Positions 2,966 to 63,342 of a stretch of 64,000 nt of DNA are shown here, piece by piece; positions within the stretch are counted from its first letter, which is position 1; each line of letters starts with the position of its first letter. Below the pieces are notes generated by a model. That model did not search any database and had not been told where the DNA came from. It was given only the letters and a program-made list of their open reading frames with translations. The DNA is from Phallusia mammillata (taxonomy: Eukaryota): NCBI GenBank assembly GCA_965637545.1, contig OZ281500.1, positions 12,586,001 to 12,650,000 on the forward strand, read 5' to 3'. A program made the position numbers and the translations under genes.

Positions 2966-3075
2966 TTTTCTTCACCTAGCGGCAGTTTCTTTCCAACGAG
3001 CAAAGTAGAAAGCTTCTCTCGATCGGCGACAGTTGAAACTTTACTTTCAACGAGCAGTAGTTGAAAACTTCTTTA

Positions 3076-4462
3076 TGTAGACTCTGAACGGCCGACCTGC
3101 AAGGCTGAGCCTCACAAAGGGGTTTTTTCACGTTGAAACACGCCCCGCCCTTTCCCACACAAATCACACTTCCCGAATCTCGTGTAATAATCCACAGCGA
3201 CAACAGCGGCAACAACCACAACGTCGTACACAATCAGGAACGGACAGAAACAAGAATGAGAACGGAAACGGGAACGGAGACGGGAACGGTTTTCTAAACA
3301 AGAAAACGAAACACATTGACATATGTCAACGCACAAAAATGCCAATGTCTAACTTACAAACTATTTTGCGACACAGGTCAACAGGTACAGTTCACGTATC
3401 AACAGTTGCAAGACGATGAAACAATCGCTGCAATGACTATAGGAAAATACAGCATGCCATAAGTTACACATAAACGCCATGAATTAATTTAGGTCACAAG
3501 TCAAATTAAACACTCACCGACAATCACGGTAAACAGGCTTCACTTGAAGATTAATTAGTCAGTCGTCACAATATTTAATATAGCCTTAGTCGTCTCTAAA
3601 AATGTAACACAAACGAATTTACTTAATGCAGTTATAAATCACCTTGCTCGACCACGTTGTACAGTAAATGAATCAATCATTGCAACCAGGGTTGCCAGGT
3701 ACTGTCGGCTGGATTCGGACAGTATTTGTCTGAAAATCGGACATTTTAGGACAAAAAAAACGAGAGCGTAAAATTGCTAACAAGGTATCAATATCGAGGT
3801 GCCATCTGCCATTTTTTGTGCGTTTACGTTCCCCAAAGTGACGGACGTAAAATATGACGTCACTTATGCGTGCAACCACTAGAACTGAAATCCAAACTTG
3901 AAGCCCAACAAACGTCCTATGTTTGAAATAATATTTAGTTGGCAATTGCAACACGTTGCTGTAGTGTTTATCATTGGTTTCGCACCGTTTAAAAAATGTT
4001 TCGTCAACTTGTTGCTTCATATCACCTTAGATAACCATTTGTTACAATACAATTGCTTTGTACACAACAATGGTCATTCACTAGCAGACAATTATGTATT
4101 TAATGTCATAAACAAGGTACTAACCAAAACAAGTTGTACTTTTAAACCACGTTTTGTCGTAAAAAAGGGTTTGCAACCTTCAAAAAATAGGAAGGAGACA
4201 AAAAGTTATTCAATCAGCAAAATTCGGACATATTAGGACAAAAAACTAAACGTCCTAATGATTTTTACGCGTCGGACACAGCATGTGGAATTAGGCCAAT
4301 TTATCGTTTTTTGTCCGATTTTTAGGCCACCTGGCAACCCTGATTGCAACATACAGACAATAGCCTTCCAATTTTACTGTTACGCACATGGCGATTGTAA
4401 CGTCATAGCAGGGGAATAATGAGACAAGTTAATCATGCGTATCTGAACGTGGACATGTAACA
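3076..4462 (-). repeat. 5' LTR of BEL family 1 (about 720 bp without the MITE)
   Basis: TGTTACA start at 4462. The inner end is inferred at ...TCTACA (3076) because the following leader resembles that of family 2. The partner LTR is outside the window, so the inner boundary is unconfirmed. Confidence 0.6.
3687..4342. mobile_element. hAT-type MITE inserted in BEL1 LTR
   Basis: Perfect 14-bp TIR CAGGGTTGCCAGGT; 8-bp TSD ATTGCAAC (3679-3686, 4343-4350). Confidence 0.93.
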
Positions 4463-4467
4463 CTGCT

Positions 4468-12903: not shown

Positions 12904-13019
12904 CGTGGCGAAAGTCGCTTTATAGATAACTCTGGAATCCTTGTATATAGTAGCCTCTGGAAACTTTATTTCCAGGTAACTCTGAAAACTTTATTTTCAG
13001 CAAACTCTGAAAACTTTAA

Positions 13020-13709
13020 TGTAACGTCAGGAATTTGCGCGCCTGGTACCGCGCTGGCGTCACACTAGAGAAGTCCAATTTCTGGAAACGCGTGAATTTA
13101 TTTTACACTTCGACGCGGTTCAATAGGACACGGTAATCACGTCACGTTCACCGTAGACACGACACGACACGATAGACACGTTCAAGATAATCACGGTTTT
13201 CTGCAAAGAGAACATTCACTCAAAAATGCGAAACAGAAATTAAATTTATACCGGCAGAAATAAAGCTTACCAGAGTTTTGGACCAGGGTATCAAAGATAA
13301 ACACAGTTTGATATCACCAGAAAGTGTTCTACACAGATAAAAAACGTAGACTTTTAATATACGGTTAATTGCGATAAGACAACTTTAATGCAAATCAAGC
13401 TTACCTTGCAAAGGCAACATTAATCCTTTTCGTCAGAGTTTTTAAGTTTATAAAGCATTACCATCTATTAATGACAAACAAATTATAATTAGTCACTTTC
13501 ATTACTTTATCTAACGTTTGCAAATTAAAGTCAGCAACTAACAAACTACACGTGGTCCAAACTAAACTCGATACTAAATGGCCAAAAGCACAGCATAGAG
13601 AAATAAACTACAATGATATTGTTACGTCATAGGGGATTCTGGCATTGTGGTGCAATCACACCATATAAGATGTGACGTAGGTTACGGTTGAGTGATTTAC
13701 GATGTTACA
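13020..13709 (-). repeat. 5' LTR of BEL2 (690 bp)
   Basis: Near-identical to 4468-5142; contains AATAAA on the sense strand; followed by the gag leader. Confidence 0.97.
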
Positions 13710-14214: not shown

Positions 14215-15515
14215 TCCCCAAAGTTTGTCCGACTCGTTTTTCCATCAAATCCTTGATGGATTTGGATGAAACTTACACAGATGGTAGATGTAGTTATGTA
14301 GATGTGCATCCCACTTTGTTTTTGTTGATAACCCCAGTATTTACCCCGCTAGACCTCTAAAATAGGTATTTTTTCCCCGAAGTTTGTCCGACTCGTTTTT
14401 CCATCAAATGTTTGATGGATTTGGGTGAAATTTAAACAGATGGTAGATGTAGTTATGTAGATGTGCATCCCTCTTTGTTTTTGTTGATAACCCCAGCAAG
14501 GGCGTCCGCACATAGGGGCAAATGGGGTCAGCTGACCCCCCCTGGAAAATTTTTGGATGAAAAATGAAAAAGCGAGAACATGCAAAAATAGGCAATTTTC
14601 TGAAAGAGGGAGGAGTAAAGGTGATACGAGTGATGGCTGGCTGGTCAAGCTCTCCGATTGTGATCATCACCCTTTTCGGGAGTATCCCACCCTCTATTAA
14701 TTTACGAAGATACCTACAAGCTACCCGTAATCGCAAAATTTGACAACTTGAGCTCCTGTACCCTCAGAACCACATTACTAGTGTGGGCACTGGCTTTATC
14801 TCACATAAATCTGAAGAAGGATAATTCACAGTTTCAGATAAAATCTATAAAATCATTATCCAATAACCTATCAACGCGACGTTCCGGATATTTCACTTTG
14901 TTGATGAACTCGTTAGCGTCCTCCTGAGCATGACAATGCCAAGCACTACTAACATGGTTTCGAGCAGAGTTATGGAAATTTATACTTTATACATGGAGCA
15001 CTGGTGAATGCGCCAGTTGTGTCACGATGAATAGGCTGCCGAAAGAGCACACACAATTTGCACATGCGCCCTCTTAGGAGAGGAGAATACGCTGGCCACC
15101 GAAAGGGCAGAGTGAACCCTCCTTGACCCTCACTAACCGAAAACCTGCGGACGCCCTTGAACCCCAGTATTTACCCCGCTAGCCCCCTAAAATGGGTATT
15201 TTCCCCCGAAGTTTGTCCGACTCGTTTTTCTATCGAATGTTTGATGGATTTGGCTGAAATTTACGCAGGTGGTTGATGTAGTTATGTAGATGTGCATGCC
15301 ACTTTGTTTTTGTTGATAACCCCAGTATTTACCCCGCTAGCCCCCTAAAATGGTTTTTCCCCCCAAAGTTTGTCTGACTTGTTTTGCCATCAAATGATTG
15401 ATGGATGTGGCTGAAACTTATACAGATGGTAGATATAGTTATGTAGATGTGCATCCCAATTTGTTTGTCCGGATAACCTTAGTATTTACTCCGCTAGCCC
15501 CCTAAAAGGGGTGAG
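14215..15515. repeat. ~158-bp minisatellite, about 4 units, interrupted by a MITE
   Basis: Unit starts (CCCC(A/G)AAGTTTGTC) recur near 14216, 14375, 15204 and 15361. Confidence 0.9.
14497..15159. mobile_element. hAT-type MITE/deletion derivative
   Basis: Perfect TIR CAAGGGCGTCCGCA; TSD AACCCCAG (14489-14496, 15160-15167). Confidence 0.93.
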
Positions 15516-56074: not shown

Positions 56075-57055
56075 GATTTTCTGTATTTAGGAACACTACA
56101 TGCAACTAAACATTACTACACACTCAAGTTGAAACCTGTAAATAAAAGTCAGGAGTCAACTTGAAGTCTAATAAGTTAAACTGTTTCTTCTATAAAAAAA
56201 TAGCAAACCATAGTAAAAAACAGTTTGTGATGGTCATTTGTCAAAGAATAAACATAATTATAAAATTAAAACGAATAAAAAAATTAAATTACCACATAGC
56301 ATACAATATTTAAAATTATGTCCTGAAAACTGCACTATATGAGAAAGTATTGGAAAAACACAGCCATTAGGCCCATTACAATACATTTTATGTGTTAATA
56401 GCTCTAAAATAAAGAACCTAATATTTTTACAAAGAAGGACTAACACACCTCGTCGTTAGGACAATTAGTGGTAAATTTACAACCTGATTTTGTTCGAACA
56501 TTTTAGAGATGTGAATTCTACAAGTTTTTGAAAAGTGATTCAACTTTGTACCTGTACAACAACCAAAAACCAACAAAAATTCCCTACAAATACATTCAAA
56601 CTAAACTAGCTGCACCGACAGCACCAATTATCCATAGGTGGACCTGTCCTAGACCATAATTGCACATGCACATTCACTGATATCCACCATCTTATCTTAT
56701 GTGTGCAAAGTACGACACGGTCTGTTGCACATAAATCAAATTTGTTTACGCTTGAGTGCACACTATAAAGTGGAGCAAATATTTTGTGCTCTATGCTTCC
56801 ATGTACTTGAAGGCTTACTAAACGTCAAATAATGTTTTAAATTTCGAAAAACCGATTTTTATACTATTTGAGATACCACCACTCAAATCTGCATGTTTTG
56901 CTTGCAAATAGTCGATGCCAAAAATGTTCAGACGGATTTACAATTATGGTAACTATTTTATTTAATACTTGAGGCTTTCAGTTAGCTAAATATTAATTTA
57001 ATAATATATTTAATTTGTATCCAAACAAAAAAATCATTTTGGACATCACTGTAGA

Positions 57056-57932
57056 TGTTACATCGCCTTGTACATATGTTTATGTTTTCTGTGTTTCCCG
57101 CCAGTAGCCTTGATTCGTGTGTATGACGCAGTGTTGTGCAACCTGATACATTGTCTGGCACACTATCGGTGATTGTGATGTCACAACTTTGACATTGTTT
57201 ATTGGTAACACGTCTTGTAAGCAAGACCGCCTCGTGTTTATTAGTGACTGGAACTTACAGCGTCTGCATGCGTTTTTTAACTGGTCATTTATGTTTGTTT
57301 TTTGTGTAACAAACAGGAAAATTATGCTGTTTAGAAACTGAATCGTCCAATGTGTGACTTGTATATTTAGTGATCGGTAAGCATATGTTTAAACCTTGTT
57401 GTGACCTTTTGGATTTGAATTTATATGAAACCTGTATTCAGACGTGAATTCCGCCGTCGTCCAACCCCGTGTTATTCTGAACCGAACTGTGTTATTCCGG
57501 TAAGATTATTGTTGCTTAAGTTTGCCGTCAGTCACTAGTGTGATTAAGTGATGTTTATATGTGATGTTATTAGATGCTGTGTTTACAGACCTTCTACTGA
57601 TCGCTTGCATTTAAACGACTCCAGTCCTTTAATAGTTTGGTAAGCGTAAATGTCATTGAAATTCTCCTTCTGTTGCCTTGTCTTAATTTGAACATTTTTT
57701 GTAGAAACCGCCTTTTGACCCCTTGTACTCGCCGTGCTGCCATACTCTCGAGCGCCATCTTTCGGCTATATTGTAAAATAAAAGAGTTCGTTATATAGCT
57801 GCTGGCGTCTTGGAGTTTGAGCGCAAGGAAAGGCGCGTTAAAGACAATTTTAGGAACACAAGCGATCGCCCCTGTTGTGCTGTCTGGAGGCGCATGGAGT
57901 CACGCCTTCCGATAATTAAAGACAGCGCAACA
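57056..57932 (+). repeat. 5' LTR of BEL3
   Basis: TGTTACA...CAACA; AATAAA near 57777. Confidence 0.97.
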
Positions 57933-57975
57933 TCGTTTGAAACTTCTGGACACTTGAACACCCACGGCTTGTTGA

Positions 57976-60267
57976 TTGACGTCAAGCATGGAAAACTTCA
58001 CAATGGAAACTGACAAAGGCGCCATTCCTGCGCCTGAGTCACATGACTCACTCTCCACTGTCGAAATCACTGACAAAGACAAAATTTCCAGTTATACATA
58101 CGCTTGGCAACAAGCTTGTTTGCGAGTTGAAGAATTAATGCTAAAAACCGAAAATGTCACCCTCGTAAGGGAGTTTGTTCTAGTGATTGAAAGAACCTTC
58201 AGCGATCTTGTCGCCGCGTATGCCCCCTTTGAGGAAGGTAACGAAGCCATGTCTCAAGCACGACGGGCATGCCAACAGGATAAACGTGAACTGGATTCCC
58301 GTGTACAGGAATGGTTCGTAAACGTCGAGAAATCCATGGGTCGCCACGAAACTCGATCGAGTTACATGTCCAGCTCCCATTTCGGTTCGGCAAGTACTCG
58401 CACGTCTGGTTCGACGGAAAGTTGCCGAAAAGCTGCCAGGGTACGGATGCGCGTAGCTCGCTTGTCGCGACAGCAACTCGATGAAGATGTCGCCTTAGAA
58501 ACCCAACAAGCTGACATGCAAGCCGCTTTCGCTAAGCAGCAAGCCGCTTTCGAAAAGCAGCAGGCCGCCATCGATGCCAAACGAAGAATAAAAAATAGGG
58601 ACAATGAAGTCGCGTTGGCCGAAGCCGAGTTCCTTGCTTGGGACGAAGAGTTGGAGAACGAAGGTAGACCGGTCGTGCACCAACCACAGATTAATGACTT
58701 GTCGCCACCGGTTGCATCACTTGGCAATTGTTCCAGGGAGCCCGTATATTCTCCACCACGTTCATCCGCTGGGGCCCAGACTCCGACAAATCCCGTAAAA
58801 ATGTCACGCCCGCAAATTTCGAAAATGGATATAAAGCCTATACTTGCTCCTGCTGTTGTTCCACCTGTCGAAGGGTCGCGTACCGATTCCGACTCCTATC
58901 CTCTATACATGTACAAACCGCGTGCTTCTTCCCCGCCTCGATGTGCTCCCAACACCGATTTCGTTCAACAACAAATAGTCCTGCCTCAGCCGGCCATCAA
59001 GAAGTTCGACGGCGACCCGTTGAACTACTGGTCGTTTGTTCGAGCCATTGAGTCGCATGTTCATCGCAGAACAAAATCCGAAGAATCGCGACTAGTTTGC
59101 TTGCTTCAATACTGTGAAGATTCTGTTGCTGACAAGCTCGAAATCTACAGCAAGGATGCAGTCTCTGGTTACTCAAAGGCGCGTTCCCGACTGTATTATG
59201 ATTACGGTCAACCACATATTGTTGCCAATGCTTGCGAACGCCGGTTAAAGCTTTTTCCGCCCGTTAGACAAGGTCGACCAAAGGAACTTAAGGATTTTTC
59301 TGACTTGCTTGAAAAATGCCGTAGTTCTCTGGAAGACAGCCAAGAGTTCGCAAGTTTAAACTCACTAGATACGTTGAAGCAACTCATCCGGAAACTTCCA
59401 TTTCAGCATCGAGAGAGATGGGTGGAACACTCTTTCCAGGTGCTTGAGGAAACCGGGAGACAAGCTGGATACCTTGCGTTTACAAGTTTCGTTGTGCGGT
59501 GCGCCCGTGTTGTCAATTCACTGTTTGGGTCCGAAGCGGTCTACGAAGTCGTGCGCGAAAAAACGCCAATCGAGCCAAAACGGAGTTCAAGAGCCGCTAC
59601 GTACAACGTCTCATCATCGAAGTTTAACAGGGCACGTTCTGACACACCGCCTGTTCCCGCTCCGTGTTGTGTCTGTTGTAAACTGTCACATGATTTGTCA
59701 ACGTGCCCGGACTTCGACAAAATGACCTTACAAAAACGTCGCGAGGTTGTAACCTCTAATGGCCTTTGTTTTAAATGTCTTTGTTCAGGGCATCGTTGCG
59801 GAAATTGTCCCTGTCGAGAATCGTGCTCCGTTGAGGGTTGCATTAGCACCTTTCATCATACGAAGCTGCATGGTGCATTTCAAAGGAAACAGGTCGTCGG
59901 AAATGATGAGAACCCTGTCATGGAAACGACTACCCAAACGGTTTCTAGTATGAAGGCGTCCACCAGTAACTGCGGAGTCTACCTCAACGTCGTGCCGGTG
60001 AAAGTCAGACATAACGGTATCGAGGTAAATACGTATGCCTTCCTGGATCAAGGCTCTACTTCGACATTTTGCGAACAACGACTAATTGACAAACTCGGCC
60101 TACAGTGTAAGGGTCGAAAAATATGCTTAAGCACGCTTACCGATCAATCTCGAGTGTATCAAGGTTCCACGATCTCTTTCACTGTTACTCCGCTTGGTGG
60201 AGGAAAGCCTCTGGTCCTTAACGAAGTCCTGTCTATTGATAAAATTCCTGTATCGCCCGCGACTTGA
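57976..60267 (+). CDS. BEL3 gag-protease ORF (763 aa), truncated by deletion of RT
   Basis: FDGDPLNYWSF, three CCHC-type knuckles, AFLDQGSTSTF; ends at the deletion junction near 60255. Confidence 0.9.
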   Translation: MTSSMENFTMETDKGAIPAPESHDSLSTVEITDKDKISSYTYAWQQACLRVEELMLKTENVTLVREFVLVIERTFSDLVAAYAPFEEGNEAMSQARRACQQDKRELDSRVQEWFVNVEKSMGRHETRSSYMSSSHFGSASTRTSGSTESCRKAARVRMRVARLSRQQLDEDVALETQQADMQAAFAKQQAAFEKQQAAIDAKRRIKNRDNEVALAEAEFLAWDEELENEGRPVVHQPQINDLSPPVASLGNCSREPVYSPPRSSAGAQTPTNPVKMSRPQISKMDIKPILAPAVVPPVEGSRTDSDSYPLYMYKPRASSPPRCAPNTDFVQQQIVLPQPAIKKFDGDPLNYWSFVRAIESHVHRRTKSEESRLVCLLQYCEDSVADKLEIYSKDAVSGYSKARSRLYYDYGQPHIVANACERRLKLFPPVRQGRPKELKDFSDLLEKCRSSLEDSQEFASLNSLDTLKQLIRKLPFQHRERWVEHSFQVLEETGRQAGYLAFTSFVVRCARVVNSLFGSEAVYEVVREKTPIEPKRSSRAATYNVSSSKFNRARSDTPPVPAPCCVCCKLSHDLSTCPDFDKMTLQKRREVVTSNGLCFKCLCSGHRCGNCPCRESCSVEGCISTFHHTKLHGAFQRKQVVGNDENPVMETTTQTVSSMKASTSNCGVYLNVVPVKVRHNGIEVNTYAFLDQGSTSTFCEQRLIDKLGLQCKGRKICLSTLTDQSRVYQGSTISFTVTPLGGGKPLVLNEVLSIDKIPVSPAT

Positions 60268-62095
60268 ATTGACCGCCGCTGTGCTTGCTGCAAAACTTGA
60301 TCGCTTGATGAGAAAGGAACTGGACTTGCCAATTACCCGTTCAACCTTCTGGAGTGATTCCACTGCTGTTTTACATAGCATCCGTAATGCTACGAAACGT
60401 TTTCCTGTGTTTATAGCCAACCGTTTGGCCGAGATAGAGAGGTTGACTGACGTTTCTCGCTGGAGGTACGTTCCAACTAAAGAAAACCCTGCAGACGATG
60501 CTTCCAGAGGATTACCTGCCACATCTTTCGTCGGGTCACGTCGCTGGTTAAAAGGGCCGTCGTTCCTTTTGGAGTCGGAAGAAAATTGGCCTGTGCAATC
60601 AGTGCCAACCCCTGAAGTTCCCGCAGAATTTAAGCCTCTTATCGAAAGGACTGCTGGGTCTTTTGCAGTCGATGTTTCAAGATCGACTTTTTCTGTTGAT
60701 CGCATTGTCGAGCATTACTCAAATCTGCATCGGCTAAAGAAAGCAGTGGCTTGGTTGATCAGATTTAAGACTTATCTGAGTCCTGGGATAAGACAGTCAA
60801 TCAAACGCACTGCTCTTGATGTGTGTGAACTTGAAAATGCTGAATTGGAACTTGTCAAGTATGTGCAACGGAAACACTTCGGCTCACTGCTATCGTCTTT
60901 GACTCAACGAGGCTGTCCGAAAAGGTCCGATTGCAGTTCCGCAGTGTACAAGCTAAACCCTATCCTCAAAGATCAACTCATCCTGGTTTAGCGCACACTT
61001 GGACATCTATTAGAAAAAAATACTGGATTGCAAAGGGGGGCGTTGCTGTTCGTCGCGTTCTCGGAAGATGTTTGCCCTGTCGTCGTCGCAGTGCTAGACC
61101 AGGACAGCAAATGATGGCTGATCTACCACCGGCCCGTCTTGGTGTTGCTGAACCTCCGTTTTCAAATGTCGGAATTGATTATTTTGGACCATTTGGTGAA
61201 ACAAGGGCGCAGTGAAATTAAACGGTACGACTGCATATTCACTTGTCTTACAATCCGTGCTGTACACTTGGAAGTCGCCCACAGTTTGTCTACCGATTCG
61301 TTTATTGCTGCTCTTCGTCGTTTCATCGGGCGCCGTGGAGCACCCGTTCACGTCTACAGCGATAACGGTACAAACTTTGTTGGCGCAGAGCGCATCCTGC
61401 GAGAGTCACTACGAGACTGGAACCAGTGTCAAATTACTGAATTTCTCCACCAGAAAGGAACGTCATGGATTTTCAATCCCCCTGCTGCGAGCCACATGGA
61501 TGGTGCATGGGAACGGATGATACGGTCTGTTCGCCGAATCCTGTCTTCAATTACGTCCTCCCAAGTGATGACCGACGAAGCTTTGGAGACATTGCTTGTG
61601 GAAGCTGAGGCTATAATCAATTCTAGACCCCTGATACCTGTTAGGTTTGATCACAGGGATGAAGAACCGCTGGACCCGAATCATCTGTTGCTGATGAGAG
61701 GTTCCCCGAATATGCCACCGACAATTACCGATGCGAAGGACTGCTACACAAGACGTCGTTGGCGGCAAGTACAGTTTCTAGCCGACCAGTTCTGGCGCCG
61801 ATTTGTGCAGGAGTACTTGCCCGCCGTTGCTACTCGTTCCAAATGGCACGAGAGCCAGCCGAACTTTGAGAAGGACGACATCGTTCTACTGGTTGACGAT
61901 TCAAAATGCCGTTCAAGGTGGTTGGTTGGACGCGTTGTCCGAACTTATCCCGACGAATCTCAAAAGGTACGCACTGTGCTCGTACGGACGAGCGGTGGTG
62001 TGCTCCAACGGCCGATCGCCAAGCTTTGCCGCATCGTTGATTCTGACGAGAGCTTAACACCGACCTCGCCGAGCATTCGCAGCTCGGACTGCTAG
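60255..62095 (+). pseudogene. BEL3 RNase H C-terminus and integrase, frameshifted
   Basis: RLELTAAV..FWSDS..NPADDASRG; truncated zinc-finger region (HPGLAHT..CLPC); GIDYFGP then a frameshift; SDNGTNFVG, WERMIRSV, EAEAIINSRPL, DUF5641-like C-terminus. Confidence 0.9.
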
Positions 62096-62228
62096 ATGGA
62101 AGCCAAATTGAGTTTTCATAACAATAACTGTCCGACAAGAAATCATCGCCTCATTGCGATGCACGCGCGATTGGCGATGTTGTGTTTGAAAAAAATGTGT
62201 CACGTTGCTCCCACATTTTGGGTGGGAG

Positions 62229-63105
62229 TGTTACATCGCCTTGTACATATGTTTATGTTTTCTGTGTTTCCCGCCAGTAGCCTTGATTCGTGTGTATGAC
62301 GCAGTGTTGTGCAACCTGATACATTGTCTGGCACACTATCGGTGATTGTGATGTCACAACTTTGACATTGTTTATTGGTAACACGTCTTGTAAGCAAGAC
62401 CGCCTCGTGTTTATTAGTGACTGGAACTTACAGCGTCTGCATGCGTTTTTTAACTGGTCATTTATGTTTGTTTTTTGTGTAACAAACAGGAAAATTATGC
62501 TGTTTAGAAACTGAATCGTCCAATGTGTGACTTGTATATTTAGTGATCGGTAAGCATATGTTTAAACCTTGTTGTGACCTTTTGGATTTGAATTTATATG
62601 AAACCTGTATTCAGACGTGAATTCCGCCGTCGTCCAACCCCGTGTTATTCTGAACCGAACTGTGTTATTCCGGTAAGATTATTGTTGCTTAAGTTTGCCG
62701 TCAGTCACTAGTGTGATTAAGTGATGTTTATATGTGATGTTATTAGATGCTGTGTTTACAGACCTTCTACTGATCGCTTGCATTTAAACGACTCCAGTCC
62801 TTTAATAGTTTGGTAAGCGTAAATGTCATTGAAATTCTCCTTCTGTTGCCTTGTCTTAATTTGAACATTTTTTGTAGAAACCGCCTTTTGACCCCTTGTA
62901 CTCGCCGTGCTGCCATACTCTCGAGCGCCATCTTTCGGCTATATTGTAAAATAAAAGAGTTCGTTATATAGCTGCTGGCGTCTTGGAGTTTGAGCGCAAG
63001 GAAAGGCGCGTTAAAGACAATTTTAGGAACACAAGCGATCGCCCCTGTTGTGCTGTCTGGAGGCGCATGGAGTCACGCCTTCCGATAATTAAAGACAGCG
63101 CAACA
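62229..63105 (+). repeat. 3' LTR of BEL3
   Basis: Apparently identical to 57056-57932. Confidence 0.97.
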
Positions 63106-63342
63106 GTAGATAACCATGATGTACCTTTCGAAAACAACAACAGCAAGGTGGTGCGCACGCAATTTTTCATCCAGACTGCAAGACTGCTTGCAATTTGCCA
63201 AACTAACAACATAGGGGCAGAGACGCATAGTGCAGACTGCACACAGCAGACTGGACACTTGCAGAATGCTTTATTGCCCAAGCGCTTAAATTTTTGTCCA
63301 TTGCTAGGATCACACGCATAAAATAATTTAGTTGGGCTACAG

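Follow-up and report, generated by a model that had tools for sequence, protein, structure and literature searches.

Complementarity between an LTR splice junction and the primer-site position suggests self-priming in BEL/Pao retrotransposons of a sea squirt

In tRNA-primed LTR retroelements, about 10-18 nt (TGG...) at the LTR border are complementary to the 3' end of a host tRNA, but a few lineages dispense with such a primer. Self-priming is established for the Ty3/gypsy retrotransposons Tf1/Tf2 and Tj1, is implied for the sushi group, and is predicted from sequence alone for the Ty1/copia TAR lineage (Houba, Osr-1) and the Tcn1 chromoviruses of plants. In Tf1, the primer corresponds to the first 11 nt of the transcript, which pair with a site just after the 5' LTR and are cut by RNase H, and a hairpin next to the primer site is required both in retroviruses and in Tf1 (works cited in PMC4600332). 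BEL/Pao elements (Pao, BEL, Sinbad, Cer7-12) form the least studied LTR superfamily, and its main survey treats neither primer sites nor introns. Here, we describe BEL/Pao elements of the ascidian Phallusia mammillata (assembly GCA_965637545.1, 240 Mb) in which the primer-site position is complementary to the element's own LTR RNA, in several lineages only once an intron of the LTR has been removed. The window analysed is a 64,000-nt stretch of contig OZ281500.1 (positions 12,586,001 to 12,650,000, forward strand), and contains three such elements, hereafter BEL1, BEL2 and BEL3 (Table 1).

Table 1. Positions of the features discussed, numbered within the window; a slash within a sequence marks the exon-exon junction.
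Feature	Position	Strand	Observation
BEL3 target-site duplication GTAGA	57051-57055; second copy 63106-63110	+	Flanks both LTRs
BEL3 element	57056-63105	+	Deletion derivative lacking the RT region
BEL3 5' LTR, 877 bp, TGT..ACA	57056-57932	+	100% identical to the 3' LTR (local alignment without mismatch)
LTR intron 1, 65 nt, GT..AG	57377-57441	+	Joint 57375>57441 (cut +1) in run X1 only; X1 depth is 0 inside it
LTR intron 2, 89 nt	57500-57588	+	Alternative acceptor makes it 74 nt, ending at 57573; two GT..AG joints in X1
End of LTR exon 3, AATAGTTTG	57631-57639	+
5' half of the proposed primer sequence, AGTTTG	57634-57639	+	Last 6 nt of exon 3; invariant in 30/30 LTR copies
LTR intron 3, 65 nt, GTAAG..TGTAG	57640-57704	+	Removal creates the junction; donor invariant in 30 LTR copies
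Start of LTR exon 4, AAACCG	57705-57710	+
3' half of the proposed primer sequence, AAAC	57705-57708	+	First 4 nt of exon 4; invariant in 30/30 copies; predicted primer 3' end at 57708
AATAAA poly(A) signal of the LTR (inferred)	57777-57782	+
U5 inverted-repeat hairpin	57873-57932	+	Ends at the last LTR base; MFE -29.4 kcal/mol, z -3.4, 0 of 200 shuffles as good
Primer-site position, GTTTGAAACT	57935-57944	+	2 nt (TC) after the LTR; G at 57939 private
gag-containing ORF (Pfam DUF1759)	57988-60267	+	ATG at 57988
Deletion junctions	60256/60257 and 60981/60983	+	Loose ends of full-length copies
Polypurine tract GGGTGGGAG	62220-62228	+
BEL3 3' LTR	62229-63105	+	Second copy of intron 3 at 62813-62877
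BEL1 last LTR intron, 64 nt	3294-3357	-	Junction AATAGTTT (3365-3358) / AAAACCG (3293-3287)
BEL1 primer-site position, GTTTTCAACT	3059-3068	-	7 nt after the LTR end at 3076
BEL1 leader with repeated site motif	2990-3075	-
MITE-like insertion in the BEL1 5' LTR, 656 bp	3687-4342	-	14-bp terminal inverted repeats (CAGGGTTGCCAGGT), 8-bp target duplication GTTGCAAT
AGCAG between BEL2 and BEL1	4463-4467		Separates the BEL2 3' LTR end (4468) from the BEL1 5' LTR start (4462); also BEL2's target duplication
BEL2 last LTR intron, 70 nt	13201-13270	-	Junction AAACTCTG / AAAAC
BEL2 primer-site position, GTTTTCAGAGTTT	13002-13014	-	13/13 complement of its junction; 5 nt after the LTR end at 13020
BEL2 leader with repeated site motif	12930-13019	-
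155-nt direct repeat, four copies in two pairs (81-90% identity)	14216-15515		Just outside BEL2

The BEL3 junction and its leader

BEL3 is a young deletion derivative, in which Pfam profiles identify a DUF1759 gag, only the tail of Peptidase_A17, and rve plus DUF5641, whereas full-length relatives in the genome have LTRs about 7 kb apart. The first-pass annotation had noted that removal of a candidate LTR intron creates a junction nearly identical to that of BEL1, and that this junction pairs 9 of 10, with one G-G mismatch, with the leader following the LTR. Each of these sequence statements holds: in the window copy, AGTTTG/AAAC pairs 9/10 with GTTTGAAACT, the mismatch being central, and the BEL1 and BEL3 LTRs are otherwise dissimilar, their best blastn hit being 44 nt at 75% (E 0.02). 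Two corrections are nevertheless needed, as both the G at 57939 in BEL3 and the final T of the BEL1 junction (3358) are private to the window copies. All eight other BEL3 copies with a leader (LTR loci L002-L009) read C and carry GTTTCAAACT, a perfect 10/10 complement of the junction; the annotation had suggested looking for such a perfect pair in autonomous family members. Similarly, the 11 other BEL1 copies read G, so that AGTTG/AAAAC forms 10 perfect pairs with GTTTTCAACT, and up to 13 in some copies. The motif shared by BEL1 and BEL3 is real, and explained by compensatory change on both partners.

Splicing of these introns was examined by comparing contigs of four public runs (X1, X2, X3 and X15) with positions 56950-62228. 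In the RNA-like run X1, GT..AG joints remove introns 1 and 2, while intron 3 is seen as two contig ends that continue into the other exon: a contig ending at 57639 runs on with the first 17 letters of the next exon, and another, starting at 57704, is preceded by the last 12 letters of the previous exon. None of these joints occurs in the deep, DNA-like run X15, and the genome contains no intron-less BEL3 LTR. X1 also carries intron-3-containing sequence, so both forms exist, and its contigs run straight across both deletion junctions, showing that this non-autonomous type of copy is transcribed; X1 also reads G at 57939, where X2, X3 and X15 read C. Among 30 LTR copies, the donor and the junction 10-mer never vary, while the intron interior varies at 35% of columns, against 8% in the preceding exon.

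Could such a short, quasi-palindromic and AT-rich pairing arise by chance? For the window copy alone it is not significant, as its duplex energy (-9.8 kcal/mol) is reached by 8% of shuffled junctions, and it therefore fails the shuffling test proposed in the first-pass annotation. With the C carried by the eight other copies, the energy is -13.6 kcal/mol and is reached by 0.3% of shuffles. A perfect run of that length across a plausible intron junction has P=0.0025, although P is only 0.036 if any GT..AG pair is accepted as an intron. The 10-mer does not exist as contiguous DNA anywhere in the window.

Other BEL/Pao lineages of the genome

Ten more full BEL/Pao elements (E01 to E10) were retrieved from the genome, giving nine lineages together with those of the window. 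In 8 of these 9 lineages, the segment starting 2-7 nt after the LTR is a perfect complement, over 10-15 nt, of the element's own LTR. It spans the last LTR intron junction in BEL1 (10-13 nt), BEL2 (13 nt), BEL3 (10 nt), E06-E08 (11 nt) and E09 (11 nt), and matches contiguous LTR sequence in E01, E02, E03 and E10 (10 nt) and in E05 (15 nt), E10 belonging to the E09 lineage but having LTRs that lack the introns. Dependence on splicing is therefore not general, since E01-E03 need none and E05 pairs better unspliced (15 nt) than spliced (10 nt), and no complement was found in E04, whose LTR ends look atypical. Per-lineage shuffle P values range from 0.0005 to 0.06, and Fisher's combination over the nine lineages gives p=2.8e-9 under the loosest null. 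Although the LTRs cannot be aligned with one another, both partners change together: the exon after the junction opens with three to five A's followed by C, and the site opens with G followed by the same number of T's, in 5 of 5 junction lineages, while E01 and E02 differ by a compensatory pair. The concern that the motif is quasi-palindromic does not apply to BEL2 or the E09 family, whose pairs are not palindromic.

Two natural controls indicate that the predicted junctions are correct, and that spliced LTR RNA is reverse transcribed now and then. The two LTRs of the intact-looking E10 (L049/L050, genome coordinates G000:C1:7163340-7170544) are the exact intron-less version of the E09-family LTR, with three GT..AG introns of 165, 63 and 62 nt missing, and only one further locus (G000:C5:3511801-3512189) has this form, while 35 or more LTRs keep the introns. 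Likewise, a BEL1-family element (L063/L064, G000:C6:18377735-18384291, minus strand) lacks two introns (79 and 63 nt) in both LTRs and keeps its leader site, its contiguous junction reading AAAAT where the other copies read AAAAC. In BEL1 itself, the MITE-like insertion is absent from other LTRs of the family, which are 721 bp long, and BEL2 inserted right at the edge of BEL1.

The structural context of the segment was then considered. No TGG lies within 7 nt of the LTR end in any of the nine lineages, and the 17-mer and 13-mer complements of the BEL3 leader occur in the genome only in BEL3 leaders or at control level, leading us to reject a tRNA primer. An Rfam scan of the window gave nothing at gathering threshold. 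The BEL3 hairpin directly before the site has analogues built from other sequences in most surveyed families (E01, E02, E03, E06-E10 and BEL2). The junction window, always 199-243 nt from the LTR end, is the best duplex partner of the leader in the whole spliced LTR in six of seven junction-type elements tested (five lineages). In BEL3 it ranks second, as a U5 segment (57806-57822) pairs with the leader with slightly better energy (-19.3 against -17.5 kcal/mol, with G-U pairs and a bulge). The long-range helix is part of the minimum-energy fold of the spliced RNA in BEL2 and E06, whereas forcing it costs 4.6, 5.6 and 8.6 kcal/mol in BEL1, E09 and BEL3, respectively, with a pair probability of 0 in the unconstrained BEL3 fold. 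In the leaders of BEL1, BEL2, E06 (L041/L042) and E09 (L047/L048), the site motif is repeated two to four times and interleaved with internal complements of 7-10 nt that could mask it in local hairpins, while BEL3, E01, E03 and E05 have none.

A further clue comes from 28 BEL3 LTRs compared at 36 diagnostic sites. The block 57719-57917 is always inherited whole and reassorts with three different upstream haplotypes, the switch lying in the interval 57667-57718. This is the pattern expected when U3 comes from one packaged RNA and R-U5 from another, and places the effective 5' end of the strong-stop template around the predicted primer 3' end, at 57708/57709, but it equally fits a transcription start at that place. 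Since a four-gamete test finds nine recombination intervals in the LTR, the boundary is not unique and represents a hint rather than a proof; the same analysis in BEL1 had too few informative sites.

Possible roles of the complementary segment

The window copy is a slightly damaged example of a general and very probably functional feature. The first-pass annotation had named no function, but the position, the lack of a tRNA site and the U5 hairpin point to a primer-binding site, and we favor, with moderate confidence only, a Tf1-like self-priming in which the primer is split by an intron. In this proposed mechanism, spliced LTR RNA anneals with ...AGUUUG/AAAC to the site, is cut just 3' of AAAC (57708/57709), and the new 3' end primes minus-strand strong-stop DNA through U5, the hairpin lying next to the initiation helix. 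The strong-stop template would then end at 57709, so that everything upstream in a new LTR, introns included, is copied from the 3' LTR part of an RNA that was not spliced there, which would explain why genomic copies keep their introns. The primer could act in cis, from the 5' LTR copy, or in trans, from another spliced RNA. However, no priming, cleavage or cDNA intermediate was observed, and as the transcription start is unknown, the spliced contigs may all come from the 3' LTR part of the RNA, in which case the junction would not be in the 5' end of the template. In addition, the site starts 5-7 nt after the LTR in four lineages, further than usual, a long 5' primer fragment would complicate plus-strand transfer, and intron-less LTR copies are rare, although they should work under this model. 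A still more tentative extension is that reverse transcription is licensed by splicing, and could start only with RNA processed by the host spliceosome, while the 3' LTR of the template must stay unspliced to pass the introns on. This would tie the start of reverse transcription to the spliceosome, and also account for the host-sized introns and the two LTR modules.

Alternatively, although this seems unlikely, the helix may be a long-range RNA structure sensing the splicing state of the LTR RNA, for packaging, dimerisation, translation control or for bringing the 3' LTR acceptor next to the leader for first-strand transfer, priming being done by something else. The possible origin of the spliced contigs from the 3' LTR only, the competing U5-leader pairing of BEL3, the leader-internal complements that could form switches, and the U5-leader and 5'-3' interactions that seem to exist in retroviruses are compatible with this view. 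In contrast, every LTR element needs a primer, no tRNA-type or other candidate site is present in any of the families, the helix sits exactly where a primer site sits, after a U5 hairpin, and its 3' end coincides with the LTR module boundary.

A less likely variant of self-priming places the transcription start at about 57705, so that the three introns are U3-only, the junction exists only in the 3' UTR, and a cleaved, spliced RNA primes a second RNA in trans. The module boundary is equally what a U3/R boundary would give, the rarity of intron-less LTRs is expected if the core promoter lies in intron 3, and, as weak evidence, X1 exon depth is not clearly double the internal depth. Nonetheless, CRE-like motifs lie about 500 nt upstream of 57705, and three conserved consensus introns in a 3' UTR would be inferred to expose the RNA to nonsense-mediated decay. 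In E03 (L035/L036), a TATA box lies about 70 nt upstream of the complement, which would put the complement within the 5' region of the RNA; between them, about 40 nt downstream of this box and 12 nt upstream of the pairing segment, LTR positions 257-272 hold a 16-mer that differs by one base from the ascidian spliced leader and is followed by GT. Trans-splicing of that leader (PMC1488885) as the source of the BEL3 junction was rejected by inspection, as joining it to exon 4 would give only 5 paired bases.

Priming by a host RNA, such as an internal tRNA fragment or another small RNA that the junction only resembles, is very unlikely: half-tRNA priming exists in copia-type elements, and a 10-nt complement to a host RNA cannot be excluded by genome pattern searches, but the sites differ between families and each matches its own LTR, so that no single host RNA could fit them all, and the extended complements have no multi-copy genomic source. 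Chance is the least likely explanation, despite the weak values obtained for the window copy alone and under the null allowing any GT..AG pair, given the perfect pair in all other copies, the non-palindromic pairs of BEL2 and E09, the covariation and the combined probability across lineages.

Comparison with described systems

With canonical BEL/Pao elements, these elements share the domain set (DUF1759 gag, Peptidase_A17, rve plus DUF5641), TG..CA LTRs and a 5-bp target duplication. In the literature searched, no paper links BEL/Pao with self-priming or describes a primer split by an intron, and finding the mechanism in this superfamily would show that it arose or spread more widely. With the plant TAR and Tcn1 lineages, the present case shares a self-priming inferred from sequence alone outside fission yeast, but these are elements of other superfamilies, for which no intron is reported to split the primer. 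As in retroviruses, LTR-leader complementarity and a U5 hairpin flank the initiation site, but the retroviral structures assist a tRNA primer, while here no tRNA site exists and the complement occupies the primer-site position itself. The closest resemblance is to Tf1/Tf2/Tj1 and the Tf1/sushi group: no tRNA primer site, a site of about 10-13 nt just after the 5' LTR complementary to the element's own upstream LTR RNA, a U5 inverted-repeat hairpin beside it, and a cut, here only inferred, at the 3' end of the complement. The pol lineage is however BEL/Pao and not Ty3/gypsy, the site can start up to 7 nt after the LTR, and in junction-type families the complement cannot be the first nucleotides of the primary transcript, because it needs an upstream exon and donor. 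These elements would therefore work like Tf1 without belonging to its lineage.
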